A DNA stretch of 64,000 bases, from positions 558,001 through 622,000 of the forward strand of contig NEEC01000020.1 in assembly GCA_002189035.1 (NCBI GenBank). Direction: 5' to 3'. This DNA is from Utricularia gibba. Taxonomy: Eukaryota; Plantae; Magnoliophyta. The notes under the pieces were generated by a model. It had not been told where the DNA came from. It was given only the letters and a program-made list of their open reading frames with translations, and ran no database searches. Of this stretch, positions 3,080 to 53,500 are shown piece after piece. The translations under genes were made by a program, and so were the position numbers. Numbering within the stretch: position 1 is the stretch's first letter; every line of letters starts with the position of its first letter.

Positions 3080-4096
<1,017 letters not shown>

Positions 4097-7213: not shown

Positions 7214-8650
<1,437 letters not shown>

Positions 8651-9913: not shown

Positions 9914-12075
9914 GGAAATCGAATCGATTAAACGATAATTAAATGTACTTACAAACTAATAATAGTTAATAAATATTACTCGAATATTCATATAATTTTC
10001 TATATATATATATATATATATTTGTTTATTATTAATATTTAGATTTGATTAAAATTACTCAATTAATATATAAATTAAATGATTAAATGTTTTATTAGAA
10101 AATATAAATACTTGTATTTTAGATGATCAAATGTGCATAATTGTGTTTTGATATATTTGTTATATTAAAGGGAATAAAGTATTTATAAAATCAATCGAAA
10201 GACTATTATTATAACTATTTCATTAAATACAAAATAAATGAAAGTAATCCAAAGGATCCGTGATGATATATCAAATGGGGGAATGAAAGTGTTTAAATAA
10301 AACTCTCATAATTTTATATGAGATATTTTTCTTAAACATCGTAAGTAGATCATATAATATCATATAAGACATGAGTAGATCTTTACATTTGATATCATAA
10401 TGGAATCTATGATTATCCTATTGGTGGGATGAGAGGGCAATCAATGAAGACGCTGAATATCTAATAAGAGTACAATGTAAGGATATAGGTCTAATAATGA
10501 AATTTCATATTAGTTACAGATGATAGAAGAGACGTGCTAAAATAAATAAATTTTTTTAATTTTGTATTAGATTTTTTTCTCAAAAGAGAATAATGTAAAA
10601 CCATAAATATTAGATGTCCGTAACGGACAATATCGTATAAAAGGAAGGTAGGTCGTGACATTTCGACACACCTATGCACCGGAAACATTGGAATCATCAA
10701 TTCCAACGAATTTCCAATTTCTAATATCTTTTATCTACATAATCGTAATAATTTATGATATGTTAAAATCACATTTCTCTGGAATAAACACTTCATAAGA
10801 TTACGTATTTAACAAATATACGAAACTCAATATCAAACTATGTCACATATAAATGCCCTTTAGGCGATTATTTACATAAACATGCACTATTAGTATTTCT
10901 CAAATCAAATCATCACTAATTGCAAAAGTTGAACACTTCTAGAAGGATCAATGTTTTATGAATTTAACCCTCCTCTTGTCCCCCGCCTGATCTCTTTATA
11001 CACCAAGTCCCAATTACATAACTTAGGAAGCCAATAAAAAGACCACCTAAAACAATAAAGAATGACAAAAATATTATATTGTCCATGATGACCAATCTGC
11101 AAAACAAATATAATAATTAATAAATAATTCAAATAATATTATCAAAAAATCAAAATATGAATAACATAGTTTGTCTATTGTAATGATTTTTTTATGCTAA
11201 TATTCGTATTTTGTTAATTATATTCAGTTATTTGATTAATTCAAATCCGAATTTCATATTTTTGCTAATATAAAATCTCAAATCAATTAAATACAAAATA
11301 CGATTGTGTTGAATATTCAATTTATATTTAAAAAAACTGATAAAATAAATTAAATCAATGATTTATATTTTAAAAATATGCAATAAATCGAACATTTGAA
11401 TAACTATAAGTCGAAAAATTGATTAAACTGATTATAATTTTTAGTATATTTTAAAAAACAAAATACAATAAAACATTAGTTACGTATTAACGGTGTCTTG
11501 AATGTTGAGTGACCCATTGCATTTGCATTGATAATATATTTATAGGGAAATAAATGAATTTTGTGAATTAAAATATAATTTTGATAATTTATTTTTAAGG
11601 GAAAATCATTATTATCTTGACAGAAAAGGTTTTTATTTTTCAAATAATATTTTTCTTTATTATTAACAACACAAGAAATGTGATATTGGATTATTTTGAT
11701 TTTGAAAATTTTTAAATTGATTTTGTTGTGTAAATTGAGAATCTATAATATGTAAAATTAAATTTGAAGAAAATGAATTGGATTCCACTTATATTATTTT
11801 TTAAAGCAATTGAATATTAAAAAAATTAGTTATAATTTTATTAAACTTATTTTGCTTTTAAAAATAAAAAATAAAAATCTATTTGAAAGATATTTTTCAA
11901 TTTAACATCAATAAATCTTATTTTAAAGACTACCAGAAATGAAAAATTATTCCTTCTATTATATAAACTATAATTATTTGATTATGGTGTTTGACTATTA
12001 AGAAATTATTTTAATAAAATATAAATTAGAGTTTACAATTTTAAGAAAAGTAAAAATGACTATATATTTATGTTA
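9900..12075. repeat. Repeat unit A of the micropeptide array
   Basis: Colinear with 14410-16620, 21141-23620 and 24480-26100. Anchors: ttagatgat.aaatg.gcata, atgaatttaaccct, gacccattgcatttgcattgat. Confidence 0.85.
10964..11086 (-). CDS. Micropeptide copy A, 40 aa, intact: MDNIIFLSFFIVLGGLFIGFLSYVIGTWCIKRSGGGQEEG
   Basis: ATG lies 10 nt after the acceptor ttttgcag. Intron 11097-11483 has a GTAACT donor. TATAAATA at 11537-11544. Hydrophobic stretch followed by C and KR. Confidence 0.7.
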   Translation of the reverse strand: MDNIIFLSFFIVLGGLFIGFLSYVIGTWCIKRSGGGQEEG

Positions 12076-12094
12076 GAAAAGAAAGAAGAGCAAT

Positions 12095-12262
12095 ATATTT
12101 ATGTTAGAAAAGAAAGAAGAGCAGGAGAGACGTTGAGGTTTGGAACAATCCCCGTTGTAAGATTCATCTTCATCACTATTTTGTTATCTGTTTGCTGCAC
12201 CTCTTAAACCTATCCCACTGCTTCCCTCTACATTTCCATTTGTGTGGTCATCTTCAGATACC
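12095..12262 (-). pseudogene. Inverted relic of YSL exon 1 with internal deletions
   Basis: The reverse strand reads gggtatctgaagATGACCACACAAATGG..AGAGGTGCAGCAA..ACAGATAACAA..AATAGTGATGAAG.TGAATCTTACAACGGGATTGTTCCAAACCTCAACGTCTCT, matching three separate pieces of 18250-18480. Confidence 0.85.
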
Positions 12263-12263
12263 C

Positions 12264-12375
12264 AGTTAGGGTCCAAATTGAAAATAATTTTTCTGTAGTA
12301 CCTAAATTGCAAATATCAGTAAGATCATCCCTGAATTCAAATTTGTCAAGAGTTCAGACCTCCACAAAATAATTA
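12264..12375 (-). repeat. Element X, terminal part (inverted relative to the chitinase intron copy)
   Basis: Matches the reverse complement of 8005-8100. Confidence 0.75.
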
Positions 12376-14045
12376 TATGTTCGACTAATATTTAATCAAT
12401 TATTAGTTTGTAATTATATTTAATCAGCGTTTAATCGATTTGATTTCTTTGTGGATTAGTCAAGGGAAAAATTACTACATTGTTTAATAAACAAAAATTT
12501 AGTATATTAAATTATAAAAATTGAAATATAAGATAATAATCTCTATTGATGGAATTATAGACATAGTATTTATTTTAAGTAATTTATTATAAAAATATTT
12601 TAAAATTAGTTAAAAAATAAATAAATTCTTCTCTAAAATAACATAAATATATAGTTATTTGTTATTTTTTCAAAATCACAAACTCTAATTTATATTTTAT
12701 TAAAATAATTTCTTAATAATCAAAGACCGTAATGAAATAAACTAATAGTTTTTATAAAGAACGAATATTTTTTTTATTTCTTTTATTCTTTAAAATAAGA
12801 TTTATTTATATTCAATTGAAAAATATCTCTCAAGTAGATTTTTATTTATTATAATATAATATTTTTTATTTTTTAAAAACAAAATAAATTTAACAAAATT
12901 TGAATAAATGTTTTTAATGTTCGATTGTGTTAACAAATTATGCAAGCGGAATCCAATTCACTTTCTTAGAATTCAATTTTTCAGATTATTGATTCTGAAT
13001 TTATACAATAAAATAAATTTAAAAATTTTTAAAATCAAAATCATCCACATATCACATTTCTTGTGTTTAATAATAAAGAAAAATATTATTTGAGAAATAA
13101 AATTTTTTCTATCAAAATAATAATGATTTTCCTTTGAAAATATATTAATAAAATTATATTTGTAATTCATAAAATTCATTTATTTCCCTATAAATATATC
13201 ATTAATACAAATGCTATGTATCACCGAACATCCAAGTCACCTTTGATAGGTAACTAATGATTTATTATCTTTTATTTTTAAAATATAATAAAAATTATAT
13301 TGCATTTAATTGATTTTTCCACATATAGTTATTAAAATGTTCAATTTTTAAAATATAAATTATCAATTCAGTCTATTTTATCATTTTTTAAGTATAAATC
13401 GAACATTCATTATAACTGTATTTTATATTAGTAAAAATATGAAATTCATATACTCAGTTAATCAATTAACTCAATATAACTAACAGAATACGGATATTAG
13501 AATCGAAAATCATTAAGCTACATAAATTATGTTATTCATATTTCGATTTTTTGATAACATTTTTGAATTATTTATTAATTATAATATTTGTTTTGCAAGT
13601 TGGATAGCATGTACATATTTTTTTATGTTCTTTTCTTATTGCCATCATAGGTGATGTAATTCGGGATTGTTGGAAAAAGATAGTGAACATGGGACAAGCG
13701 GAGGGTAAATTTCGTAAAATATCGATTTTTCTAGAAGTATTCTGTTTTTGTGATTGGTGATGATTTAATATGGGAAATACTACTCATACATGTTTATGTA
13801 AATAATTAGCTGAGAAACATTTATATATGAGATAGTTAGATGCTAAGGTTCATGTGTTTAATAAATATGTAATAATATAAGATTATAATCTTATGAAGTG
13901 GTTATTCTAGAGAAATGTGATGTTAATACATTATAAATTATTAAAATTATGTAGATGAAAGATGTTGAAAACTCACAATTCATTGGAATTGGTGATTCTA
14001 CCACATTCAACATACGGGTGCGGTGAAATGTCGCGATATACACTT
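12375..14045. repeat. Repeat unit B, inverted copy
   Basis: Its reverse complement is colinear with ~10640-12075 and ~21850-23475. Confidence 0.85.
13609..13760 (+). pseudogene. Micropeptide copy B, frameshifted with stop codon lost
   Basis: TATAAATA at 13189-13196 and donor AG|GTAACT at 13250 are retained. The ATG frame ends MYIFFYVLFLLPS* because of a deletion. The homologous frame reads FLIAIIGDVIRDCWKK..GQAEGKFRKISIFLEVFCFCDW*. Confidence 0.65.
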
Positions 14046-14054
14046 GTATTGCAT

Positions 14055-14310
14055 TCAGACCCCTAATAATTATTAAATTTGTTAATCCATTTATTTTTGG
14101 ATTGTATTTTCAGTCTCCAATAAAAAATATCAAAAAAATTGTATCCAAGATATTTAGAAATTTAGGATAGATAAAAGATAAGAGTAACTATAAAATCAAT
14201 AAAATTACATGTTTAAAATAAATAATATCATGAGTATACAAGATATTTCATTTTTATATTCGTTTTTATTTAAAAAATAAATTTATATTTTATACAATAA
14301 CATTTAAAAT
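14055..14310 (-). repeat. Element X, inner part
   Basis: Matches the reverse complement of 7790-8030. Confidence 0.75.
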
Positions 14311-14409
14311 ATCTATTTTTTAACGAATAGATAAATCAATTGGATGAATAGATTCATTTGAAATCATTGCAAAAATGTCCAGATGATGCATTCGAGTTGA
14401 AAGCAAAGG

Positions 14410-16620
14410 TTTATTATTAGTATGTAGGTTTGATTAGAGTTACTCAATTAAGATGTAAATTAAATTATTAAAGGTTTTATTTGAAAATATCAATGTTTGT
14501 ATTTTAGATGATGAAATGCACATAACGTTGTGTTGATAAATTTGGGAAATTATACAGAATAAAGTATTTATAAAATTTATCAGAAGAGTTTAATTACAAT
14601 TGTTTTATTCAATATAAAATAAAAGAAATTAAGTCGAGGAGTCTAGTGATAATATTCTACATTAATTATTAATGGAAGAAGAGACATGTTTAAATAATAT
14701 CTTTCTAATTTTATATTCAAAACATATAATATAATGAAATACAAGTCTAAGTTGTGACATTTCAACATACCTATATGCGGGATGCACTGGAATCAACAAT
14801 TTCAATGAATTCTCAGTTTCTAACATCTTTCATTTACAAAATTATAATGTGTTAACATCGCATAAATCTAGAATAACCACTTCATAAAACTATCAATATT
14901 TATTACATATTTATCGATAAAATTATAATGTCATAAGCATGTACTAGTAGTATTTCCCAAATCCAAACATCACCAATCGCAAAAATCGAACACCTCTAAA
15001 AGTATCGGTATTACATATTACCAATCTTATATATAAATGCTCCTTGTCAATTAATTACATAAGCATGTAATAGTAGTATTTCTCAAATCAAATCATCACC
15101 AATCGTAAAAACTGAACACCTCTAAAAGTATGGGTATTTTATGAATTTAACCCTCTGCTTGTCCCACGGGTGATCTCTTTCTGCAACAACAACAAATTAC
15201 ATAACATATGAAGGCAGTAAGAAGAAGTCAACTGAAAAAACTGCAGAATATGAAAAATATCATAATGTCCATGATACCCAATCTGCAAAACAAATATTAT
15301 AATTAATAAATAATTCAAAAATATTATCAAAATATCGAAATATGAATAACATAATTTATCTATTTTAATAATTTTTCGGTTTTAATATTTATATTTTATT
15401 AGTTATATTCAATTATTTCATTAATCAAGTATCCTAATTTGATATTTTTACTAATATAAAACCTCAAATCAATTTAACAAAAAATACAATTATGTTGGAA
15501 GTTTTATTTATATTTACAAAAATTGACAAATAAATTAAATCTATTATTTATATTTAAAATATACAATAAAATCGAACTATATGTTGAAAAATCGATTAAA
15601 CAGAATATAATTTTTTATTATATTTGAAAAACGAAATACTACAAAACATTAGTTACCTATCAAAACTTCGTTGGACGTTGAGTGACCCATTGCATTTGCA
15701 TTGATGATATATTTAAAGAGAAATAAATGAATTTTGTGAATTAAAAATATAACTTTCATAATTTATTTTTAAAGATTTTTATTTTTTAAATAATATTTTT
15801 CTTTATTATTAAAAACTCAATAAGTGTGATATATAGATGATTTTTTATTTTGAAAATTTTTTAAATTAATTTTTTTTGTGTAAATTCAGAATCAATAAAC
15901 CGAAAAATCAATTTGAAGAAAATAAATTTGATTATGCTTATATAATTTGTTAATGCAATTGAACATTAAAAACATTCGTTCAAATTTTATGAAACTTATT
16001 TTTCTTTTAAAATAAAAAATATTATATTATAAAAATTAAAAATCAATTTGAGAGATATTTTTCAATTAAACATGAATAAATCTTATTTTAAAGAATAATA
16101 GAAATAATTATTATTCCTTCCTTTATGTAAAGTCTTAGTTTATTTGATTATTAAGACATTATTTTAAAACATTATAAATTACAGTTTACGATTTAAAAAA
16201 AAATAAAACATGACTCGATATTTATGTTATTTTAGAGAAGAATTCATTTATTTTTTTAACTAATTTTTTAATATTTTTTTACATAATGAATTATTTAAAA
16301 TTAATATAATGTACCTATAACTTTTATTCTATCAATAGATATTATTAGCGTATATTTCAATTTTTTAAAATTTAATAAAGTAATTTTTTGTTTATTAAAA
16401 AATTTAATATTTTTTTCCTCTTGGGTATTTCCCTAGGAAATTGAATGGGTTAAATTGATTAATAAATATTACTTGAACATATGACAGTTATTTATTCGTC
16501 AATAAATTTAAATTGTAATATATTATATTGGTATTCGTATAATTTTATATATATTTCTTGTATTTTAATTTGGTTAGAATTGCACAATTAAGATTTAGAT
16601 TAAGAAATTAAGCATTTTAT
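14410..16620. repeat. Repeat unit C
   Basis: Colinear with unit D. Contains an internal ~125-bp duplication (14935-15010 / 15061-15135). Confidence 0.85.
15147..15272 (-). pseudogene. Micropeptide copy C with one nonsense codon: MDIMIFFIFCSFFS*LLLTAFICYVICCCCRKRSPVGQAEG
   Basis: Same acceptor/ATG context and terminal QAEG*. One in-frame 3-nt insertion. TGA at codon 15. The TATA is the variant TTTAAATA. Confidence 0.65.
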
Positions 16621-18261
16621 TAGATACTATGCATCGCTATGGGGCATTCGGACGGATGGTCCCTAGACCAAAAGGTGCCCTCGCATACTATTAGCTTCAA
16701 ATGAGATATCAGTTTGTAATTTGTAATCCCCAAAATTAACAGTTTGTAATGTATCTTCACATTTTCCTTTAATATTGACTACCTCTAAATTTATTAAACA
16801 AACTAAATTCAACATTGTTGCCGTTAAACATCGGTCTTGTGAAGCGTGCTGATTTCGGGAATAAATGCAGGTTAGATACTAGTTTGTATTGATCTAAAGC
16901 CGGCCGATTTATGCTAAATATGGAAAAGGAGTTAGATATTTTTTACGTGGAAATATAGGTGGAAAAACTACGAAGTTGATGATAATTTCATTAATCATAT
17001 AATAATTAATGAGATTTTCCGCAAAATTTCATTAACCATATAATTTTATGTTAATAATAGTTTTTGTTACTCGGGTTAAGAGAAGTGACTTAAAAACCCT
17101 AAAAACGGGTTGATTAATTTTATTTATTTATTTATACATTTGAATTAATTTTTTATAATAGATGCTTTAAAATAATTTTTAAATATATTTTAAATATTTA
17201 GAAGAATATAAATTATTTTTAATTATCCTCACATCATTTTTAAATTCTATTAATTATAATTTATTTTTGACGTATTTATTTTATTTTATTAAAAACATTT
17301 TTAAAAACCAAAAAAATGCTATTTTAGTAAATTGAACAACAGTACAAATCTTCTTCAAATATGCAGTCAAAATCATCAAAAGGAATTCAAACTTGGGTAA
17401 AGTGCCGTTTTGATCACGAAAGTCGGAATCTTTGTCCACTGTGAATCACGGGAGGAGAAGGGGTTGACGAGAAAGGCAAGTGATGACGACGGCAAGCTTC
17501 AGACTTCCATAAGCTTTTATTTTTTATTTTTTCGTATCGCCATGATCTATCGTTCCTTACTCATCTCAGTGTAAAGGGGGATCTTGAGCATTTTTGCCGG
17601 AAGGCTGTTAATGGGTCAATTGTTGACGTTATCTGATGCTGAGCGAATTTCCAGAAACTAACTATGCTAGCTGATCGCATCTCGAAAACACAAGATTTCG
17701 TCTCCCCATTTTCTCCAACGTTGTTGCAAACGCAGGGATTGTTGGGATCAGTTACGAGTCGTCTCCTGCTATATGCATCATGGTTGTTACTGAAGCCATA
17801 TTTAAAGCCCCAGAGTAGCGATCTGTTTCCTTAGCTTTTTTTCCGGAAGGCTGTTAATGGGTCAACGACGAAAAAGGTAGCGATTGTTTTGTTTTCTTCC
17901 CTCAGCACCCCATCTCTTACGCAAACGCTAGAATATGATTGGGTAGTACGAATTCTAAACTTGTACTGCTGCAGTACATCAAAAATTCTAAACATTCTTT
18001 AAGCAGTTGTCATCGTCTTCCAATTTGGAGGGCCGTCTGGCGTTGTTGGCTGATTTGGGTCTTTTTCCCTTTTTATACCTGGCTGATTATCGCCACCCGG
18101 GCGAAGTTGTGAAAGGACATCGAACTGGGGGTGGCGTTTTTTTCTTTCTCCAATTCGGTTTTGTTTGGTTTCCTCATCGAGAGGGAATTTGTCTTTATTA
18201 ATAACCAGTTCCTCATCCGGGTGCGTTGGGTTTTGCTAGACATCCAGGTGGGTATCTAAAG

Positions 18262-21140
18262 ATGGCCACAGAAATGGAGATTGAGAGGGAAGCAATGGGA
18301 GAGATTTCAGAGGTGCAGCAAGCAGCTATGAGTATTCCTCCGTGGAAACAGCAGATAACAATCAGAGGGATACTTGCCAGTATAGTTATCGGGATTATTT
18401 ACAGTATAATAGTGATGAAGCTGAATCTTACAACGGGGATTGTTCCAAACCTCAACGTCTCTGCTGCTCTTCTTGCTTTTGTTCTCATTGGAACATGGAC
18501 ACAGATTCTTGAAAAGGCCAATATTGTGACCACACCATTTACTAGACAAGAGAACACAGTTATTCAAACTTGTGCTGTTGCTTGCTATGCCTTAGCTTTG
18601 GGAGGTGATTCATTTTGAGCTCTGGATGCTTTTGTTTTGTGTTGCTTGGTTACCGAATAATCCAAATGTTAAGTTGTGTAACCAGGTGGCTTCGGTTCAT
18701 ATCTTCTGGGATTGAACAAGAGAACTTATGAGCAAGCAGGGGTTGATACAAAAGGGAATCCACCTGGGAGTTACAAAAATCCAGGGCTTAATTGGATGAT
18801 CCCCTTCCTTTTGGTTGTCAGCTTTGTTGGATTATTAGCCATGGTTCCCCTGAGAAAGGTGAAAGCACAGCCAAGAAGTTGAAATTGTATTCTACATGCG
18901 TGTTTTGTTTGGTTTCCTCATCCTCATTTTTTTTTTTTATTTGCAGATAATGATAATAGATTACAAGCTAGCATATCCAAGTGGAACAGCAACAGGTGTT
19001 CTTATCAATGGATTCCATACAAAGAAAGGAGACAAAGCAGCAAAGTATGGTCATCCTCTTTTAGCTGTTGAGATTAGAAAAGGAAATCAGTTACTAATGG
19101 CAATTAACCTGGCTTTCTAAATGAATCTTCAGGAAACAGGTGAATGGATTTCTAAGGTTCTTCTCCCTCAGTTTCATCTGGAGTTTCTTCCAATGGTTCT
19201 ATTCCGGTGGTGAGCAGTGTGGCTTCATACAGTTCCCAACATTCGGCTTGAAAGCATGGAGACAAACGTGCAGTCCATTATTCTCATTTTCTAACTATTG
19301 CTACTCTTTTCAATTGCAACCATTAACTAAAACAAAGTTGATTTCTGCAGATTTTATTTCGACTTCAGCATGACATATGTAGGAGCCGGCATGATCTGCT
19401 CCCATCTGGTGAATTTTTCTCTAGTTTTTGGAGCTGTACTTTCTTGGGGAATCATGTGGCCCCTAATACATGCTAACAAGGGGAGCTGGTTTCCAGCAGA
19501 TATTAGTGAGGGTAGCATGAAGAGTTTAAATGGCTACAAGGTTGGTCTAAGAACCTTCATCCTCCATGTGGAATTTCAAATTGGTGTTGTGCCTAAGCTT
19601 CATTCTTGATCATTATTTCCCTTATGTACACAGGTATTCATTTCAATCGCCCTTATTCTTGGTGATGGGCTCTACAATTTTGTCAAGACTCTCATCATCA
19701 CTATCAGAAACATGCATGCTACGTTCAGAAAGCATCATTTTGGAATAGGTGATCCCTAGTGCCATTTGACCTTAAATTTTCTTCTCAGATTACATAGAAG
19801 TTGATCTTGTGTGAAGTTTAAACAGTTATAATCACATCGTTTTAGCTTATTCGTACACATGCTTTCTCCTCTCCTCCATCTGTATGTGTTATGTTTCTGT
19901 ACAATTGTGTCAAGAGTCCCATCTTCACTATCAGAAACTTGCATGCTACATTCAGAAAGCATCATCTCGGAATAGGTGACCCATAGTGCCATTTTACCTT
20001 AAACTTTCTTCCCAGATTGCATAGCAGTTGATCTTGTGTGAAGTTTCAATGGTTACAGAAGAATTGTCTTCTTAGTTTATTGATGCACATGCTTACTCTT
20101 CTTCTCCCTGTGTGGAATATGTCTGCTGTGGTTTATTCTTTTGCACTTCCAACTGCATTCCATGGGAGACTTTTCTTATCTTGCTAACATGTATATCAAC
20201 AGTGAGACCAGAAGAAAAGGGGGAGAACTTGGATGACATCCAACAAAATGAAGCCTTCATGAGTGAAAGCATTCCTCTGTGGGTGGCTTGTGCAGGATAC
20301 ACATTCTTTGCCGTGATCTCCGTTGTCGTCATCCCGATTATGTTTCCTCAGCTCAAGTGGTACTACGTGCTCGTCGCATATATCATCGCCCCCACTCTGA
20401 GCTTCTGCAACGCCTATGGAGCTGGTCTCACTGATATAAACATGGCCTTCAACTACGGCAAAGTGGCTCTCTTCATCTTGGCTGCTCTTTCCGGGCAAGA
20501 AAATGGAGTCGTCGCCGGACTTGTTGGATGCGGTTTAGTCAAGTCCATGGTTTCCATCTCCTCAGACTTGATGCATGACTTCAAAACAGGGCATCTCACA
20601 CTCACATCTCCTAGAGCCATGCTCATCAGTCAGGCAATCGGCACTGCCCTCGGCTGCCTGATCGCCCCTCTCACATTCTTCCTCTTCTACAAGGCCTTCG
20701 ACGTCGGAAACCCGGAGGGCATCTACAAGGCGCCATACGCATTAATCTACCGGAACATGGCGATTTTGGGAGTTGAGGGCTTCTCAGCCTTGCCACTCCA
20801 CTGCCTGCAGCTGTGCTATGGCTTCTTTGCACTAGCAGTCCTGATAAACTTGGTTAGAGATGTGATCCCACAGAAGTTGGGCTTCTGGATCCCCCTTCCG
20901 ATGGCAATGGCCGTGCCATTTCTCGTCGGAGCCAACTTCGCCGTCGACATGGGGGTGGGGAGCTTGGTGGTTTATCTGTGGCATAAGATTGATAGCAAGC
21001 AGGCTGGTTTGATGGTTCCTGCGGTTGCTTCAGGGCTGATATGTGGAGATGGGCTCTGGATATTGCCTTCCTCCATTCTTGCCTTGGCGAAGATCAATCC
21101 CCCCATTTGTATGACATTTTTGCCCTCAACTAATTCCTAA
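18262..21140 (+). CDS. YSL: YELLOW STRIPE-LIKE metal-nicotianamine transporter (OPT family), 7 exons
   Basis: Exons 18262-18604, 18686-18858, 18947-19044, 19133-19267, 19351-19540, 19634-19748, 20203-21140. Motifs [88 protein letters not shown]. Confidence 0.95.
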
Positions 21141-23620
21141 TGAAAATTGAATTGATTAAACGATAATTGAATATAGTTACAAACTAATATTAATTAAAAA
21201 TTATTAATCGAATACTTGTATAATTTTCTATATATTTTTGTTTATTATTAGTATTTAGGTTTGTTTAGAATTATTGAATTAAGATATAAATTAAATGATT
21301 AAAGGTTTTATTAGAAAATATAAATGTTTGTATTTTAGATGATGAAATGTGCATAATATTGTGTTGATATATTGAGAAATCAGACGGAATAAAGTATTTA
21401 TAAAATTCATCGAAAGAGTCTAATTATAATTGTTTCATCAAATACAAAATAAACGAAAGTAAATCTAGGAATCTAATGATGGTATACTACATTGATTATT
21501 GATAGAGAAGGGAGCGTGTTTAAATATGATCACCTTAATCTTATATGAGGTTTTTTATTAAGAAAATAATAACGTAAAATCGTGAGAATTGAATACATAA
21601 AATATATAATATCATGTAAGGCGAGCATGAATAGTAATGAGATGGTAAACAATCAACAGGGATGTTGAGTGTCTAAAAAGAAAAGAATATAAAGACACGG
21701 ATCTAGTGGCCATATCTCAAATTAGTTATGTATGGTGAGTAGACTTTTTGAAATAGATAAACTCTTTTAATTTTACATGAAATTGAGGATAACATAAAAC
21801 ATTGAAGATTGAATGTGTGAAACAGATAATATTGTGCCATATGAGCATAAGTCATGACATTTAACTACATCCATGTGCCGAATGCACTGGAATCATCAAT
21901 TCCAATGATTATCAGATTGTAACATCTTTCATCTACACAACTATAACAATTTATAATGTGTTAATATCACATTTCTCTATAATAACCATTTTATAAGATT
22001 ATCAATCTCATATTATTACATATTTATCGAACACACGAAACTTAACATCAAACTATGTCATATATAAACGTTACTTTGGCAATTATTTACATAAACATCT
22101 ATTAATAATATTTCTCAAATCAAATCATCACCAATCACAAAAACTGAACATTACTAGAAGCATCAGTATTTTATGAATTTAACCCTCCTCCTGTCCCCCA
22201 TGTGATCTATTTCTCCAACAACCGCAAATTAAATAACCTATGAGGGTAATAAGAAAGGTACATAAAAAAATGGAGATTACAAAAAGTATCAGAATGTATA
22301 TGATGTCCATCTTGCAAAAAAAATATTATAATTAATAAATAATTAAAAAAATACTTTCAAAAAATAGAAATATAAATAACATAATTTATCTAGTCTAATG
22401 ATTTTTCGATTCTAATATCCGTATTTTGTTAGTTATATTCGGTTATTTGATTAATTGAGTCTCCAAATTTCATATTTTTACTAATATAAAACCTCAAATC
22501 AATTCAATGAAAAATACAGTTATATTACATGTTTGATTTATATTTAACTGATAAAATACATTAAATCAATTATTTATATTTTTAAAAATATGCAATAAAA
22601 AACGAACATTTCAATAACTATATATCGAAAAATCGATTAAATGGAATACAATTTTTTCTTATATTTCAAAAACGAAATAGAACAAAAGTTACCTATCAAA
22701 TATGCTTTGGACTTTGAATGACCCATTACATTTGCATTGATAATATATTTAAAGGGAAATAAATGAATTTTGTGAATTCAAAATATAATTTTAATAATTT
22801 AATTTCAAGGGAATATTATTATTATTTTGACATAAAAAAATTATTTTTGAAATAATATTTTTTTTATTATTAACAACATACGAAATGTGATGTGTGGATG
22901 ATTTTGATTTCGAAAATTTTTAAAATTCGTTCAAATTTTACTTTTAAAAAATAAAAATATTATATTATAAAAAATAAAAATCTATTTGGGAGATATTTTT
23001 CTATTAAACATGAATAAATCTTATTTTAAAGAATAACAGAAATAAAAAATTGCTCCTTCTTTTATATAAACTATTATTTTATTTGATTACGGTCTTTGAT
23101 TATTAAGAAATTATTTTAATAAAATATAAATTAGAGTTTATGATTTTAAAAAAAATTGAAAATGACTTTATATTTATGTTATTTTTAGAGAATAATTCAT
23201 TTATTTTTTTAACTAATTTTATAATATTTTTTAATAATGAATTATTTAAAATAAATACGATGTATCTCCAACTATTATTATATCAGTAAAGATTATTATC
23301 TTATATTTCAATTTTTTAAAACCAATTATACTAAATTTTTGTTTATTAAAAAATGTAATAATGTTTTTTCCATTGGCTAATTCCCAAGGAAATCGAATCA
23401 GTTAAACGATGATTAAATATAATTACACACTAATAATTGATTAATAAATATTACTCGAACATACAACAATTATTTGCTCGTCAATAAATTTAAATAATAA
23501 TATATTATATTGGTATTCGTATAATTTTTATACATATATCTAGTATCTAAATTTGATTAGAATTTCATAATTAAGATTCAGATTAAGCAATTAAGCATTT
23601 TATTAGAAAATACAAGTATT
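21141..23620. repeat. Repeat unit D, starting at the YSL stop codon
   Basis: Colinear with units A, C and E. Confidence 0.85.
22179..22310 (-). CDS. Micropeptide copy D, 43 aa, intact: MDIIYILILFVISIFLCTFLITLIGYLICGCWRNRSHGGQEEG
   Basis: The ancestral ATG position reads ATA, but an in-frame ATG sits 3 codons upstream, right after caag. Intron 22311-22692 has an AG|GTAACT donor. The TATA is the variant TTTAAATA. Confidence 0.65.
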   Translation of the reverse strand: MDIIYILILFVISIFLCTFLITLIGYLICGCWRNRSHGGQEEG

Positions 23621-24007
23621 TCTAGGTGAATTTTCGGGAAGCATTGTGGAAATAATTTTTTTGACCACAATAGTCTTACATTCTTGATTGTCGAATAGTA
23701 AACAACATTAGAAAATTATAATGATTTCTTAGATGAGTGTTATGAATTCTACCAGTTATTATTTTTATAATAGTTTATAGAGAAATAAGTAGTAATTTAT
23801 ATAATGATAAATATGTAATAAAATAAATTTCATTTTTATAAACATATTATTTCTTTAAAATGGATCGTGTAAGTTCTTTTTTTGTTTATTTATATTTCAA
23901 ATTTTTTTAATAATGCTATAAAAAAATTTTATTAAACACTTTATTGCAAATTTTAATGTGAATATCACCACTTTCGAATTCTAGAATATGTAAAAAATGA
24001 TGGAATA

Positions 24008-24475
24008 GGCATTGCCCTCGCCTGCCTAATTGCCCCTCTCATTCTTCCTCTTCTACAAGGCCTTCGACGTCGGAAACCTGGAGGGCATCTACAAGGCGCC
24101 ATATGCATTAATCTACCGGAACACGGCGGTTCTCGGAGTTGAAGTCTTCTCAACCTTGCCACTCCACTGCCTGTAGTTCTGATGAACATGATCAGAGATG
24201 TAATCTCACAAAAGTTGGGCTTCTGGATCCCTCTTCCGATGGTGATGGCCGTGCGGTTTCTCATCAGAGCAAACTTCGCCGTCGACATGGGGGTGGGGAG
24301 CTTGGTGGTTTACCTATGGCATAAGATTGATAGCAAGCAAGCTGGTTTGATAGTTCCTGTGGTTACTTCTGGGTTGATCTGTAGAGATGGACTTTAGATC
24401 CTACCTTCCTCTTATCTTGCTTTGGCGAAGATCAACCCCCAATTTGTATGATATTTTTTCCCTCATTTAATCCTT
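24008..24475 (+). pseudogene. YSL 3' fragment
   Basis: Close match to 20640-21140 with frameshifts, a deletion after LPLHCL and premature stops. No 5' part. Confidence 0.92.
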
Positions 24476-24479
24476 ACTC

Positions 24480-26100
24480 GAACACATGACAATTATTTGT
24501 TAATCAATGAATTTAAATGATAATATATTATACGAATACTCGTATAATTATATGTCTTTTTATGTGTATTTTTTTTATTTAGATTTGATTAGAATTAACA
24601 AGGATGCTCTAAGAGGAGAGAATGTAAGGATAGAGGTCTACTAATGATCTTATATTGGCTATGTACAATAGATAGGATGTGTTTAAATATGGAGAATCTT
24701 CTAATCTTGTATAATACAATTTCTTTATAATTGGATAACGTAAAATCGTGAGAATTAGTTATATGAAATGGACAGTATCGTATAAGATGAAGATGAATCA
24801 TCACATTTCGTCAAACTGATTCGTTGGATGCACTGGAATCATCGATTCCAACGAATTCCCAGTTTCTACATCTTTCATCTACAGTAATAATTTATAATGT
24901 GTTAACATCACATTCTTTGGAATAATCAGTTCATAAGATTACCAATCTCGTATTATTACATATTTATCGAACAAATGGAACTCAACATCAAACTATGTCA
25001 TACATAAATGCTCCTTAGGCAATTATTTATATAAACATAGTAGTATTTTCCAAATCAATCGTAAAAACCGAACACTTCCAGAAGAATCGGTATTTTACGA
25101 GCTTAACCCTCCGCTTGTCCCCCAGACGATCTATTTCTCAAACAACCCCAAATTACATAACCTAGGAAGGCAATAAGAAGGCAACAGAAAAAAATGAAGA
25201 GTACGAAAAGTATCAGAATGTCCATGATGCCCGACCTGCAAAACAAATATTATAATTAATTGATAATTCAAAAATATTGTCAAAAAATCGAAATAGAAAT
25301 AACATACTTTACCTAGTTTAATGATATTTCGGTTCTAATATCCATATTTTGTTAGTTATATTCACTTATTTGATTGATTGAATATACTAATTTCATATTT
25401 TTGCTAATATAAATACTCAAATCAATTAAATAAAAAAATATATTAAATTGATAATTTATATTTTTAAAAATATGCAATAAAACCAAACATTTTAATAACT
25501 ATAAGTTGAAAAATCGATTAGACGAAATATAATTTTTTATAATATTTCAAAAACGAAATAGAACAAAACATTAGTTACCTATCAAATGACTTCAACGTTG
25601 AGTGATCCATTGCATTTGGATTGATGATATATTTATAGAGAAATAAATGAATTATGTGAATAAAAAATATAATTTTAATAATTTAGTTTCAAGAGAAAAT
25701 TATTATTATTTTGAAAGAAAAGATTTTTACTTTTTAAATAATACTTTTCTTTATTATCAACGACACAAGAAATGTGATGTATGGATAATTTTGATTTTGA
25801 AAACTTTTAAATTACTGTTGTGTAAATTAAGAATCGATAAACCAAAAAATTGAATTTAAAGACAGTGAATTTGATTCCACTTATATAATTTTTTAATGCA
25901 ATTGAACATTAAAAACATTACTTCAAATTTTTTTAAATTGATTTTGTTTTTAAAAATTAAAAATATTATATTATAAAAATTAAAAGTATACTTAAGAGAT
26001 AATTTTCAATTAAACATGAATAAATATTATTTTAAAGAATAACAGAAATAAAAAGTTATTCTCTCTTTTATATAAAAAATTAATTTATTTGATTACGGTC
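24480..26100. repeat. Repeat unit E, downstream of the YSL fragment
   Basis: Colinear with unit D, with internal deletions. Confidence 0.85.
25103..25225 (-). CDS. Micropeptide copy E, 40 aa, intact: MDILILFVLFIFFCCLLIAFLGYVIWGCLRNRSSGGQAEG
   Basis: TATAAATA at 25630-25637, donor AG|GTAACT, intron 25236-25578, acceptor ttttgcag, ATG 10 nt into exon 2. Confidence 0.72.
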   Translation of the reverse strand: MDILILFVLFIFFCCLLIAFLGYVIWGCLRNRSSGGQAEG

Positions 26101-26109
26101 TTTCTTTTA

Positions 26110-27015
26110 TATTAGAAGGATTGATATTTTACAAATTTAACCCTCAGCATGTCCCTCGTGCAATCTATTTCTCCAACAACCTCAAATTGCATAAATTAGG
26201 AAGGAAATAAGAAGGCCACCGAAAAAAATAAGGAGTATGAAAAATATCGTAGCGTCCATGATGTGCAAAATGCAAAACAAAATTTTAGTTAATAAATAAT
26301 TCAAAAAATACTGACAAAAAATCGAAATACAAATAACATAATTTATCTTGTTTAATGATTTTTGATTCTAATGTATGTCGTTTGTTAACTATATTTAGTT
26401 ATTTGATTAATCGAGATTCTAATTTCATATTTTTACTAATATAAAACATCAAACTAATTAAACAAAAAATACAGTTATGTTGAATGTTCGATTTATATTT
26501 GAAATATTAATAAAATAAATTAAATCAATGATTTATATTTTTAAAAATATGCAATAAATCGTACATTTCAATAAATATAAGTCAAAAAATCGATCAAATT
26601 GACTATAAATATTAATAAAATAAATTAAATCAATGATTTATATTTTTAAAAATATGCAATAAATCGTACATTTCAATAAATATAAGTCAAAAAATCGATC
26701 AAATTGACTATAAATTTTTATTATATTTTTAAAAATGAAATAGAAAAAAATATTACTTACATGTAAAAGGTAACTTGGATATTAATTGACCCATTTCATT
26801 TGTAATGATGATATATTTATGGGGAAGTAAAAAAATTTTGTGATTTATTTTCATTTCTGTAAATTTGAAATATAATTTCAATAATATATTTTCAAGGGAA
26901 TAAAAACATTATGCTGACAGAAAATATTTTTATTTTTCAAATAATATTTTTCTTGATTATTAACAACACAAGAAATATGATATGAAGATAATTTTGATTT
27001 TAAAATTTTAAATTG
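26110..27015. repeat. Repeat unit F (partial)
   Basis: Homologous to the ORF, intron and promoter part of the other units. Confidence 0.8.
26137..26259 (-). pseudogene. Micropeptide copy F with one nonsense codon: MDATIFFILLIFFGGLLISFLIYAI*GCWRNRLHEGHAEG
   Basis: 40 codons with TGA at codon 26, where copy E has TGG. Acceptor AG lost (ttttgcat). TATA mutated to CATAAATA. Confidence 0.65.
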
Positions 27016-27649
27016 ATTTTGAAAATAAAAAATGATTCTACATTTATATTATTTTCAGATAAGAATTTATTTTTTATAATAAAATTAGTTTTATAGTATT
27101 GTTATATAATAAATTGTTTAAAATACATATTATGTTGTTATTCTAACCTAATAACAAATTATAACATAAGTATGAAATATAATAAATTGATATGATGTTG
27201 TTGAAAATAAATTGTAAAATTGATAGTTTAATTTCTATTTTTCGTTTCTATTATCTTTCAAAAAAAAATTATAAAATTATAAAAAAAATATTAAACACTT
27301 TAATGCAAATTTTTTAGTTGACTAGGGCATTGGGGATGATGCAATTCTAAACTCGAATTTTAACGTGTAAGTCATTTTCGGTTTCTGGAACATTTAAATA
27401 TGATGAAATAATGTAAAATTTCTTGTTTGTAGTGCAATCCTATGCATTACTGCGGGGCATTTGGACTCGTGGATGATCCCTAGACCAAAGGTGACTTCGC
27501 TCACTGTTCGCTTCGAATGTGATATCAGTTTGTAATTTGTGCGGAATTGCATTATTCCCAACCTTAACAGTTTGTAATGTGTCTTCACATTTTCCTTTAA
27601 TATCAACTACATCTAAATTTATTAAACAAACGAAATTCAACGTCAAACT

Positions 27650-28320
27650 ATATCATATATCAACGTTCATTCGAATTTTTTACATGACCATATACTAGTA
27701 GTATTTCATAAATCAAACCATCATCCATCATAAACCCAGTTCGATGGATCGGTATTTTACGAATTTATCCCTCAGCCTGGTCATTGCCTGACTTCCTACA
27801 CTCCCAAACTTCATAACCTATGAAGGTAACAAGAATGAAGGCAAAGATGCCCATAACTATATAAAATACAGTTAGTATCTCGATCATGTCTAATCTGCAA
27901 AACAAACATTATAATCACAAGTTTAATAACTATAAAATCAAAAAGCCGATCAAAATGAATATAGCTTTTATTGAATTTGGGATTTATATTTTCAAAAAAC
28001 AATCGATAAAATTGAAAATTAACAATAAGATTAAAAAATTGAAGCAGAACAATACATTAATTACCTTTCAAATGATATGAGCTGGACTTAGGATATTGAG
28101 TACCCATTGTATTTGCATTCATGATATATTTATAGGAGAGTGAATGGATTTTGGTGATTTATTTTGCATTTTGTGAATTTACATACAATTTTAATAATAT
28201 TTTCAAATGCACCGAAATTATAAAGGCATTTCATTTTCCAATAATTTTAATAGAAAAAATTGCTAATTTTTTCAAATAAGATTTTCTTTATTATTAATGA
28301 TACAAGAAATGTTATAATTG
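27650..28320. repeat. Repeat unit G, the most diverged
   Basis: Keeps the promoter, exon 1, a shortened intron and the ORF. Confidence 0.75.
27765..27887 (-). CDS. Micropeptide copy G, 40 aa, intact: MIEILTVFYIVMGIFAFILVTFIGYEVWECRKSGNDQAEG
   Basis: TATAAATA at 28127-28134, donor AG|GTAATT, intron 27895-28064, acceptor ttttgcag. Indels relative to the other copies preserve the frame. Ends QAEG-TAA with a synonymous Gly codon. Confidence 0.7.
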   Translation of the reverse strand: MIEILTVFYIVMGIFAFILVTFIGYEVWECRKSGNDQAEG

Positions 28321-50500: not shown

Positions 50501-53500
50501 CTAGGGGATGGGAGAGTTCAGCCCTTCTTGAGAAGATAAAGGGTGGAGGTTGTGGTACCTTCTGGAGGAAACTGATGGCCGTCTCCTGAATGAAGGTTGC
50601 TGCTTGAATCGGTGCAGCACTTGTTTGGCGTATAGCGACTGGAAAACAGGGCCGGCCTTCTCCCGGAGCTTGAGAGTGATGAAGAACACAAGGCGGTAGC
50701 ATATGATCAGTGCATACAACGCAGACAGATCCCACCATTTGGAATGATCAATGGGTAGCTTGAACGTCTTTGTGACCACATCCTCGCCAGTTATTTTCGG
50801 ATTCCCAGGCACCAAAGGATCGAAAACCAGTCCAAGCATGTCATTTTTGAATCCTCCCTATGGAAACCAGATTGAAAGCAATCAGGATGGACCATGGCGA
50901 CAACAAGGGCGGCCATAAACTTACCTGCAGTGCCCATGAACCGAAGCCGATATACGACATGGGGTAGCGCCAGAACAGCTTTGGGAGGTCGGAGAGGAAC
51001 CGGTAGTAACCGGCTGTCAGCATCATGATCCCCTTGTGTTGCATCATGCAATAAGATGAGGTAAGGGACTCTGCTGATTCTCAGTTTATTAACAGATGGT
51101 GCATTGAAATTTACTTACAAGAACTCCAGCCCCAGCTATGATTCCCATCAGGAAGTTAGGGACAAGTGAAGCCACGATCATCATCACACTCTCCACCATA
51201 GCAATGCATCCGAACAGATTCAGGCAAAAGAAGATGTAGTGTGAGAACTCAGTTCGGAATTTCACCATGTAGAATGTTATGGTTCCAGCCAGCATCGCCA
51301 CGGCAACCAAAAATGGAAAAGAAGAGAGGAAGTTTGAGATGATAAAGGTGGAAACACCATAGTATCCATTGTGTCTCTCCCGGTAAAACACCTGCTTTCC
51401 ACAAAATGAAGGTTAGTCTTCCATCATCATAACACAAGTCACTTGTTCCTTTGCAGTGTCCTTGTTACCTTCATCTCTTCGATGAAAGATGGAAACCCTC
51501 CAATCGACATGAAGGTCATGAAGCCTGTAACAAAACCAGCACAAGCTCCCCTAGCCAGAATTGAGGAGTAACTGGTTCCAACATCATAGAACAGTGTTCC
51601 AACGCATATGGCTACCATGATGTATATGACTACTCTGGACCAGTAGTATCCAACATCCCTATTCATATTTATGAATGATCTTTGTGTTAATGTCACTAGC
51701 TGCTGCGGCCAACTTGCTCGGCTCCCCTTGATCCAATCTAGGTCCAGCATCCGCTGCACAATTCGCTTATACTTCAGAGAGAAGTTGAATTGATCCGAAC
51801 AAATTGTTTGATTTGACTTACAACTTCAGATGCTTCTTTCATCTTCAATCTTCTGTTTCTAGCATAATCTGAGTGCCTGTAGCTATCAACAAGAATAGAC
51901 TTGATATTTGTTGTGTTTAAACTCATTACAGGATCAACAGTTTCTTCTTTGTCCTGTCATGAATCACATGTCAAAGCCCATGGAGACTTACTTCTTCATG
52001 CCCTGGTGAAGAAAACACAAACATTGCAAGTATTCGTTCATACATGGAGCCTTAGGGAGCCTTTCAATGTGGCCGTCACGATATCGAAGTCCAAGTTGAT
52101 GCAGCGGAGGAAATGATCTGACGGGTTTCTTCTACTTGAGCATGGAAACCCTGCTTCTGCAAAAAACTAAAGATTTTGCATAGTCAGTGGATTTTCGTTA
52201 GAACAAGGTCTCCAAGGTAACTAAGTTCAGACATTGCCTTTGTTGCTTGTTTGGCTTCACCAAAGTATACTGTTTCACCCCCAGACAGCAAACACAGGTC
52301 ATCAAACAAAGCAAAAACTTCACTACTCGGCTGATGGATGGAGGAGATGACAGTTCTTCCATCTCGTGCAAGATTCTTAATAGACTGGACAACAAAGAAT
52401 GCTGATGCACTATCAAGTCCGCTGGTAGGCTCATCCAGAAACATCAGGTGAGGCCGTGTTAGAATCTCAAGAGCAATGCTCAATCTCTTCTTTTCTCCAC
52501 CACTGATACCTCTACGCTGCCAGTTTCCCACCAGGCGATCGGCGCAATCAAGAAGCCCCATCTCCATGATGGATCCCTCGACAATGCTATTTATCCCCAT
52601 TTTGGTCATGGAACGAGGAAGCCTCAGATGAGCAGAGTATGTCAAGGTTTCTCTGATGGTAAGAGTTCCCAATAGTACATCCTCTTGTGTCACATATGCC
52701 TGAACACATCATTCACATTGCCCATGTCAACCAATAGATGAAATGAAACACTCTGATCCAACAACGGTCTGAAGTGATTCAGGTTTGAAGCGAATGAACT
52801 TGTGACATATCTTGGAACATCATCACAAGGAGCATAACTGAAATGTAGTGAGTTACTTACAACAACACCGTAGTCCAAACTCTGCTTCCTCCCATTGAGA
52901 AGAACATTCCCAGTCATGACAGTGTTTCTTGATAATCTACCTGCAGAAATCAATGAGAAATAATCGACAATGATCTTCCTAAGAACATCATGTTTACACT
53001 TTCTCTTTTAACCTTGGTTTGGTTGTTCATACACTCCCCACACATCATACCTCCATATTTCAACCATTTGATTAGACTGTGATCCATTGGGTTCCCAGTA
53101 AATGCATAGTATCAACTTCAGTGGCGACCAATTTAGAGCACTTCCACTGAGAACCAGAAACCTCACAAATTTTGGTAGCTATTCTACCACCTTACACGGA
53201 TTAGAAAAGAGCAGAGTGAGGTCACCAAGCCCTACATGCAATTCAATAACCCCAGTATTATGGGCATCTCCATGTTCGGTATCACTATCCCCACTAGCCA
53301 CTAGCCTTGATAACAAGGCACTGAAATCCATTAATCTTTTGAATGAAATAACCACCACCCCAAATAACCCCACAGCAACTAGAATATCAATCTGTGTACG
53401 TAGAGCTTTTGTACTTAAAAGAATGAATAATCATACAGCCGTAAAAGTTGCATTCTGGTAGTTCTTTTTAATAGACTCGAGGATGACATTAAAAACAGTG

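Follow-up and report, generated by a model that had tools for sequence, protein, structure and literature searches.

Within 64,000 nucleotides of the bladderwort Utricularia gibba genome (contig NEEC01000020.1 of assembly GCA_002189035.1, positions 558,001 to 622,000; hereafter the window), a unit of about 1.2 kb recurs in a cluster, each copy carrying a short open reading frame (ORF) or its remains behind an apparent promoter and intron, and the question that this locus raises is whether such units are genes or anonymous repeats of AT-rich DNA. A profile search of the window finds exactly seven copies (A to G), all within 10.8-28.4 kb, of which A, C, D, E, F and G lie on the minus strand and B, inverted, on the plus strand. 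The initial annotation took their shared skeleton of TATA box, short non-coding exon, intron and ATG as support, independent of the ORF, that they are RNA polymerase II (Pol II) genes. Comparison of the copies with one another leads us to regard them, with moderate confidence, as a local, lineage-restricted tandem and inverted family of micropeptide genes, each predicted to be protein-coding, to consist of two exons and to carry its intron in the leader.

The anatomy of the units agrees with the earlier description at every coordinate given there. A, B, E and G carry the exact TATA octamer TATAAATA, from which C and D (TTTAAATA) and F (CATAAATA) depart by one base, a GTAA[C/G/T]T donor stands in all seven copies as had been claimed, with AG immediately before it in five, and the intron lengths first given for A, D, E and G were reproduced, to which those of B, C and F are now added (see table). 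At the other end of the intron, the acceptor reads TTTTGCAG in A, C, E and G and GCAAG, with its AG displaced by 1 nt, in B and D, while the reported loss of the AG in F is borne out by a GCAT at this position; elsewhere the gap between AG and ATG measures 10 nt in A, C and E, 9 nt in B, 7 nt in G and 0 nt in D, within the 0-10 nt originally stated. This is the sequence pattern of a U2-type GT-AG intron, with the donor present in seven of seven copies and the AG acceptor in six. The spacing of the elements is likewise regular, as the distance from the first T of the TATA box to the donor is 60 nt in five copies, 58 nt in E and 69 nt in G, and a TCA with its A 34 nt past that T is found in six of the seven, a 1-nt deletion in G leaving TA at +33. 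With this TCA as the predicted start site, transcription would begin at about 11510 in A, 22719 in D, 25603 in E and 28101 in G, and exon 1 would measure 25-37 nt across copies. The position of the TATA box relative to that predicted start, the C/T-then-A at the predicted start and the CC before the TATA box all agree with plant core-promoter rules, which place C/T then A/G at -1/+1, TATA at -20 to -50 and CC before TATA (PMC1832190). The intron body is 79-85% A+T and 44-50% T, and the coding sequence (CDS) 35-40% G+C; flanking intergenic DNA is equally AT-rich, so the A+T richness of the intron discriminates poorly.

Such an inventory was insufficient for the argument originally built on it, because the copies share one ancestor, the pseudogenes B and C keep the skeleton too, and the TATA octamer is uninformative. 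The acceptor motif TTTTGCAG is rare: over the 128 kb that the two strands make up it occurs six times, four times within the micropeptide family and twice outside it, and its occurrence within 10 nt of an ATG is therefore unlikely by chance. Crude per-region identity (mean pairwise values are highest upstream, at 82%, then 80% for the intron, 78% for the core, 73% for the downstream part and 71% for the CDS, and wherever one looks in the non-coding unit about 53% of columns are identical in every copy) implied that the signals are no better kept than background, a conclusion superseded by a composition-stratified block test. Since G/C positions in every part of the unit diverge at four to five times the rate of A/T positions, signal columns were tested against composition-expected mismatches. 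We took 31 such columns (the TATA octamer, the TCA, the donor from -2 to +6 and the acceptor from -12 to the AG, classes picked from biology, but after the sequence had been seen) and compared them with random same-size blocks from the unit's own non-coding alignment, the score being observed minus composition-expected mismatches.

All seven copies together hold 11 signal-column mismatches where about 27 are expected (P≤3e-4), in a permutation whose cells are not phylogenetically independent. For the intact copies A, D, E and G the count is 5 against about 15 (P≤1e-3), for A-F only, where the alignment is unambiguous, 10 against 20 (P about 0.003), and for the broken copies B, C and F 6 against about 10 (P about 0.06, not significant). 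The result is stable over three MAFFT modes. Relative to the remainder of the non-coding unit, conservation of the signal columns is thus about 2.5-fold better, most strongly so in the four intact copies, and it is in this form, as signals that beat their own background, that the claim of gene support independent of the ORF stands.

The same conservation emerges when all 15-column blocks of the unit are ranked by observed minus composition-expected mismatches. The three best-kept blocks are the last codons before the stop, the spacer between TATA box and predicted start (CAAATGCAATGGGTC) and the acceptor tract, followed in ranks four to seven by a block inside the intron some 50 nt short of the acceptor, an upstream promoter block, the donor and the TATA box. 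In copy G, the oldest (70-73% identity overall), the 47-column block from TATA to +45 contains two mismatches, and although the intron has lost most of its interior by deletion, the 24-nt block at the acceptor has hardly changed. At A/T sites, divergence is 5-6% in promoter and intron versus 11% in the CDS, and the CDS and 3' flank evolve about twice as fast.

The ORFs themselves add evidence of a different kind. Four of them are open (40 aa in A, E and G, 43 aa in D), the reading frame is kept in six of the seven copies with a conserved stop position, and the CDS indels among these six measure 3, 3 and 6 nt, whereas those in the non-coding parts are mostly of 1 nt. In copy D the ancestral ATG has become ATA, and a 1-nt deletion has made a new in-frame ATG 9 nt upstream, right after the AG. 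Among the last five codons, G-Q-(E/A)-E-G, most of the variation is synonymous (CAA/CAG, GCG/GCA/GCT, GGT/GGA), with a ratio of nonsynonymous to synonymous differences per site (pN/pS) of 0.29, and we read them as a coding signature independent of the promoter and splice skeleton. Codons 2-14, within the membrane span, give a pN/pS of about 2.1. In a neutral substitution simulation the probability of an intact ORF is about 0.2 at the divergence of copy A and about 0.05 at that of copy G, whose ORF is only 57-61% identical in DNA to the other copies. Copy F had already been recognised as a nonsense copy, and to it we add C, interrupted by TGA, and B, which besides being inverted carries a 25-nt deletion and an early stop; the intact A, D, E and G are candidates for function, and B, C and F decaying pseudogenes.

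The predicted peptides have one very hydrophobic span of 25-28 aa (mean Kyte-Doolittle hydropathy of 2.6-3.5 over 19 aa), followed by a Cys/Trp cluster, two to three basic residues and an acidic tail, with only 10-11 residues after the span. This order suggests a single membrane span, and the positive-inside rule would place the tail on the cytosolic side. With T at 45-50% of second codon positions, a hydrophobic product is by itself weak evidence of coding (PMC7005711).

Searches for relatives, made with exon 2 alone since the ORF lies wholly within it, returned no homologue. A Pfam scan of the four intact peptides gave no family near the cut-off (best E-value 0.08), and no Pfam profile of the known small plant membrane and peptide families (RCI2/PMP3, DVL/RTFL, CYSTM and others) matched. 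A word-indexed search with the four-peptide alignment against 5.8 billion clustered proteins, a HMMER profile search of 1.84 billion representatives and a look-alike search of the ESM Atlas each found no relative, in a protein record where 40-aa ORFs are rarely annotated and from which this species and any close relative are absent (the best identity for a neighbouring gene is 72%). The peptides likewise do not fit the secreted cysteine-rich families (NCR, defensin-like), as they show no cysteine pattern and have so few residues after the span. At the RNA level, Rfam gave no match at E≤1 over 9000-30000, and predicted folding is not unusual, with z of -1.8 and -1.75 (including -1.8 for exon 2 plus the 3' untranslated region, UTR) and of -1.1 for the intron; on these blanks, MIRNA, snoRNA-host and structured-RNA readings were dropped.

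The predicted leader raises a question of its own, as an ATG 27 nt past the first TATA T (11515-11517 in copy A), 7 nt before the predicted start, is invariant in seven of seven copies and falls in the second best-kept block of the unit. Exon 1 was rejected as coding sequence because this ATG shares the frame of the main ORF in E only, frames across the predicted junction being derived from lengths only. The invariant ATG may serve as a promoter element, or an upstream ORF (uORF) may begin there. Within the intron, the fourth best-kept block, TATTTCGATTTTTTG (11140-11155 in A and its equivalents elsewhere), may correspond to a branch-point region or to a CGATT-type expression-enhancing element; CGATT-type motifs are conserved in the intron, and their enrichment is significant only in F.

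Several observations count against the units being genes. The octamer TATAAATA has 42 matches in the window, about one per kilobase in its AT-rich part, and is for that reason uninformative alone; TATA-like strings are common, the intron interior included. Three of the seven copies are broken, no part of the unit is less conserved than the CDS, and the whole-ORF ratio of nonsynonymous to synonymous substitution rates (dN/dS) exceeds 1 in most comparisons among A-F and lies at 0.4-1.0 in those with G. T-rich sequence yields hydrophobic ORFs by default (PMC7005711). The invariant ATG, if transcribed, would open a uORF that crosses the junction and, in A, C, D and G, runs over the main ATG in a different frame. 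Exact-protein look-ups of peptides A, D, E and G and of one neighbouring gene returned no record, and scans of metagenome contigs with a 3'-UTR block and a 27-nt degenerate pattern of the predicted junction no match, so that these sources yield no transcript, start-site or junction evidence; the shared ancestry of the permutation cells belongs on the same side of the balance. Much of this would suit silent segmental repeats, either relics of an ancestral gene now dead in every copy or sequences that never were a gene, whose TATA, GT and AG were all inherited from one AT-rich ancestor, and such repeats would also fit the 71-82% identity between copies across regions of the unit, the invariance of about half of all columns everywhere, the skeleton retained by pseudogene copies, the blank searches for homologues and a dN/dS at or above 1. 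We nonetheless judge silent repeats to be quite an unlikely explanation, as they fail to account for signals that, above all in the intact copies, are kept far better than the background blocks matched to them, for tail codons that vary synonymously and CDS indels in multiples of three, for the compensating ATG of copy D, or for the ORF of copy G, intact at about 40% divergence.

The stronger conservation of promoter and intron than of the CDS at A/T sites, the dN/dS of about 2 in the membrane span and an upstream ATG that could block translation of the ORF might instead indicate that the RNA or transcription itself matters, whether as a spliced long non-coding RNA or as a promoter or intron element that acts on YSL nearby, in which case the ORF would be incidental; given a frame kept in six of seven copies, the conserved stop, the tail pN/pS, the blank Rfam search and the unremarkable folding of exon 2 plus 3' UTR and of the intron, we find this very unlikely. 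A real ORF served by a different transcript is also conceivable, with a start that falls within the proposed intron or far upstream of TATA, and with no 27-nt leader exon or no splicing. The proposed intron does hold conserved TATA-like strings (AAATATAAATC) and the strongly conserved block near its acceptor, and the conserved TATA-to-start block with its invariant ATG would suit a transcribed leader. Such a transcript nevertheless strikes us as unlikely when donor and acceptor rank sixth and third in conservation, the spacing from TATA to donor is constant in five copies, the TCA at +34 is invariant in six copies with TA at +33 in G, and copy F couples the loss of its AG with a nonsense codon.

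Under the leader-intron gene model that we favour, a conserved upstream promoter of about 200 nt followed by a CTATAAATA-type TATA box would drive Pol II transcription from the conserved TCA about 34 nt downstream of TATA. The untranslated exon 1 of 25-37 nt would then be spliced to the coding exon over a U-rich GT-AG leader intron of 170-490 nt, yielding an mRNA of about 280 nt whose first AUG would open the micropeptide ORF of 40-43 aa, followed by a 3' UTR of about 120 nt. The leader intron may raise expression as in other plant genes of this layout, and the peptide is predicted to insert into a membrane after translation, the sole hint to its role being co-duplication with a transporter gene.

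The window is plant nuclear DNA, with AT-rich spacers (20-30% G+C) between genes of 40-47% G+C, among them a YSL-type transporter gene (18226-21140, plus strand), a ribosomal P1-like gene and a class III (hevamine-type) chitinase. The chitinase ORF (3080-4024), whose best database identity is just 72%, to a Drosera capensis protein, has a truncated paralogue about 4 kb off on the opposite strand (8110-8613). The micropeptide units sit in nested segmental duplications that also hold parts of YSL: bits of the first and the last coding exon of that gene lie scattered among the units (12099-12200, 23965-24400), and 20636-21273 matches 24004-24597 at 78%. Units and YSL pieces were duplicated together. 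A transposon reading was dropped on the same grounds, namely exactly seven copies in one cluster of nested segmental duplications with YSL fragments, as seen within the window. Origin from YSL or another local gene was also considered, and because tblastn of the peptides against the window matched the seven loci only, no such origin is visible. The YSL gene body contains a tandem duplication of about 215 nt (19670-20113, 82% identity), and a repeat of about 200 nt (80% identity) with ORFs of 50-70 aa on the minus strand lies downstream of copies C and G (16620-16815 and 27394-27646). The TTTTGCAG match at 52157, tried as a local example of a real acceptor, proved to be coding sequence of an ABCG-type transporter gene (52157-52240), where TTTTTTGCAG encodes Phe-Phe-Ala-Glu; the preceding intron of that gene appears to open with GC, not GT.

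Table. Features of the seven micropeptide units, in window coordinates; donor G, first nucleotide of the intron on the coding strand.
Copy	Feature	Coordinates	Strand	Details	Basis
A	TATA box	11537..11544	-	TATAAATA, CCC just before	sequence
A	Predicted non-coding exon 1	11484..11510	-	27 nt; begins at A of conserved TCA, 34 nt past first TATA T	predicted start site
A	Leader intron	11097..11483	-	387 nt, GTAACT...TTTTGCAG, 84% A+T; donor G 11483	sequence
A	Intact ORF	10964..11086	-	40 aa + stop; one hydrophobic span, basic juxtamembrane residues, GGQEEG tail	
B	TATA box	13189..13196	+	TATAAATA, exact; inverted relative to other six copies	
B	Intron equivalent	13250..13599	+	350 nt, GTAACT...GCAAG; donor G 13250	
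B	Broken ORF	13609..13708	+	13 codons, TAG, 25-nt deletion, tail-codon remnant 13692-13708	
C	TATA variant	15710..15717	-	TTTAAATA	
C	Intron	15283..15656	-	374 nt, GTAACT...TTTTGCAG; donor G 15656	
C	Broken ORF	15147..15272	-	in frame to shared stop, but codon 15 is TGA (15228-15230)	
D	TATA variant	22746..22753	-	TTTAAATA	
D	Intron	22311..22692	-	382 nt, GTAACT...GCAAG; AG abuts ATG directly; donor G 22692	
D	Intact ORF	22179..22310	-	43 aa	
E	TATA box	25630..25637	-	TATAAATA, exact	
E	Intron	25236..25578	-	343 nt, GTAACT...TTTTGCAG; donor G 25578	
E	Intact ORF	25103..25225	-	40 aa	
F	TATA variant	26814..26821	-	CATAAATA	
F	Intron equivalent	26270..26760	-	491 nt; donor GTAAGT (donor G 26760); acceptor AG changed to AT (26270-26271)	
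F	Tandem duplication in intron	26502-26711		105 nt, perfect (100%), evidently very recent	
F	Broken ORF	26137..26259	-	in frame to shared stop, but codon 26 is TGA (26182-26184)	
G	TATA box	28127..28134	-	TATAAATA, exact; most diverged copy	
G	Intron	27895..28064	-	170 nt, GTAATT...TTTTGCAG; both ends kept, interior deleted; donor G 28064	
G	Intact ORF	27765..27887	-	40 aa; stop position and length as in others; indels +3, -6 nt	

The proposed gene layout has well-known counterparts. In plant genes of the polyubiquitin and EF1-alpha type, a first intron in the 5' UTR that ends just before the ATG boosts expression. The bladderwort units resemble such leader-intron genes in their TATA promoter, short untranslated exon 1 and U-rich intron of a few hundred nucleotides, which lies no more than about 100 nt from the start site, ends 0-10 nt short of the ATG and has conserved CGATT-type motifs. 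They differ in coding for just 40 aa of no known family and in a CGATT enrichment that is not significant in most copies, and any intron-mediated enhancement would carry over to them by analogy. Arrays of NCR and defensin-like genes share local tandem amplification, a two-exon layout, many pseudogenes and dN/dS above 1 in part of the peptide; they encode, however, a cleavable signal peptide and a cysteine-patterned secreted domain, whereas here the intron is non-coding and a hydrophobic span of 25-28 aa leaves a tail of only 10-11 aa.

As to the product, the predicted peptides recall sarcolipin, phospholamban and DWORF of animals and KdpF and AcrZ of bacteria, which are likewise proteins of 30-50 aa with one membrane helix and a short polar tail. 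The parallel with these regulators of transporters extends to the genomic setting, in that the bladderwort units adjoin, and were co-duplicated with, a membrane transporter gene; the homologue searches show no sequence relation, and the link to YSL is one of proximity only. In yeast, de novo membrane ORFs arise from thymine-rich intergenic DNA (PMC7005711), and the units are similar in their T-rich coding strand, hydrophobic product, undetectable homologues and fast-evolving membrane span, but unlike them the bladderwort family also has a polar tail that is conserved, together with a full set of promoter and intron elements. One could imagine, as a speculation to which we give little credence, a bladderwort-specific family born from T-rich intergenic DNA and encoding single-pass membrane micropeptides, with the acidic tail conserved and the membrane helix under diversifying selection, which was amplified together with the metal/peptide transporter YSL and whose target would be this transporter or the membrane physiology of the trap.

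The gene architecture proposed here is ordinary, and what sets the family apart is a peptide without known relatives, with a conserved tail and a fast-evolving helix, encoded next to a duplicated transporter gene; its value would lie in annotation and in the study of young genes. If expressed, the units would offer a clean case in which comparison of paralogues alone parts constrained promoter, splice and tail-codon signals from neutral DNA, and would amount to a family of membrane micropeptide genes, lineage-restricted and so far unannotated, in a plant whose genome is famous for its compactness.

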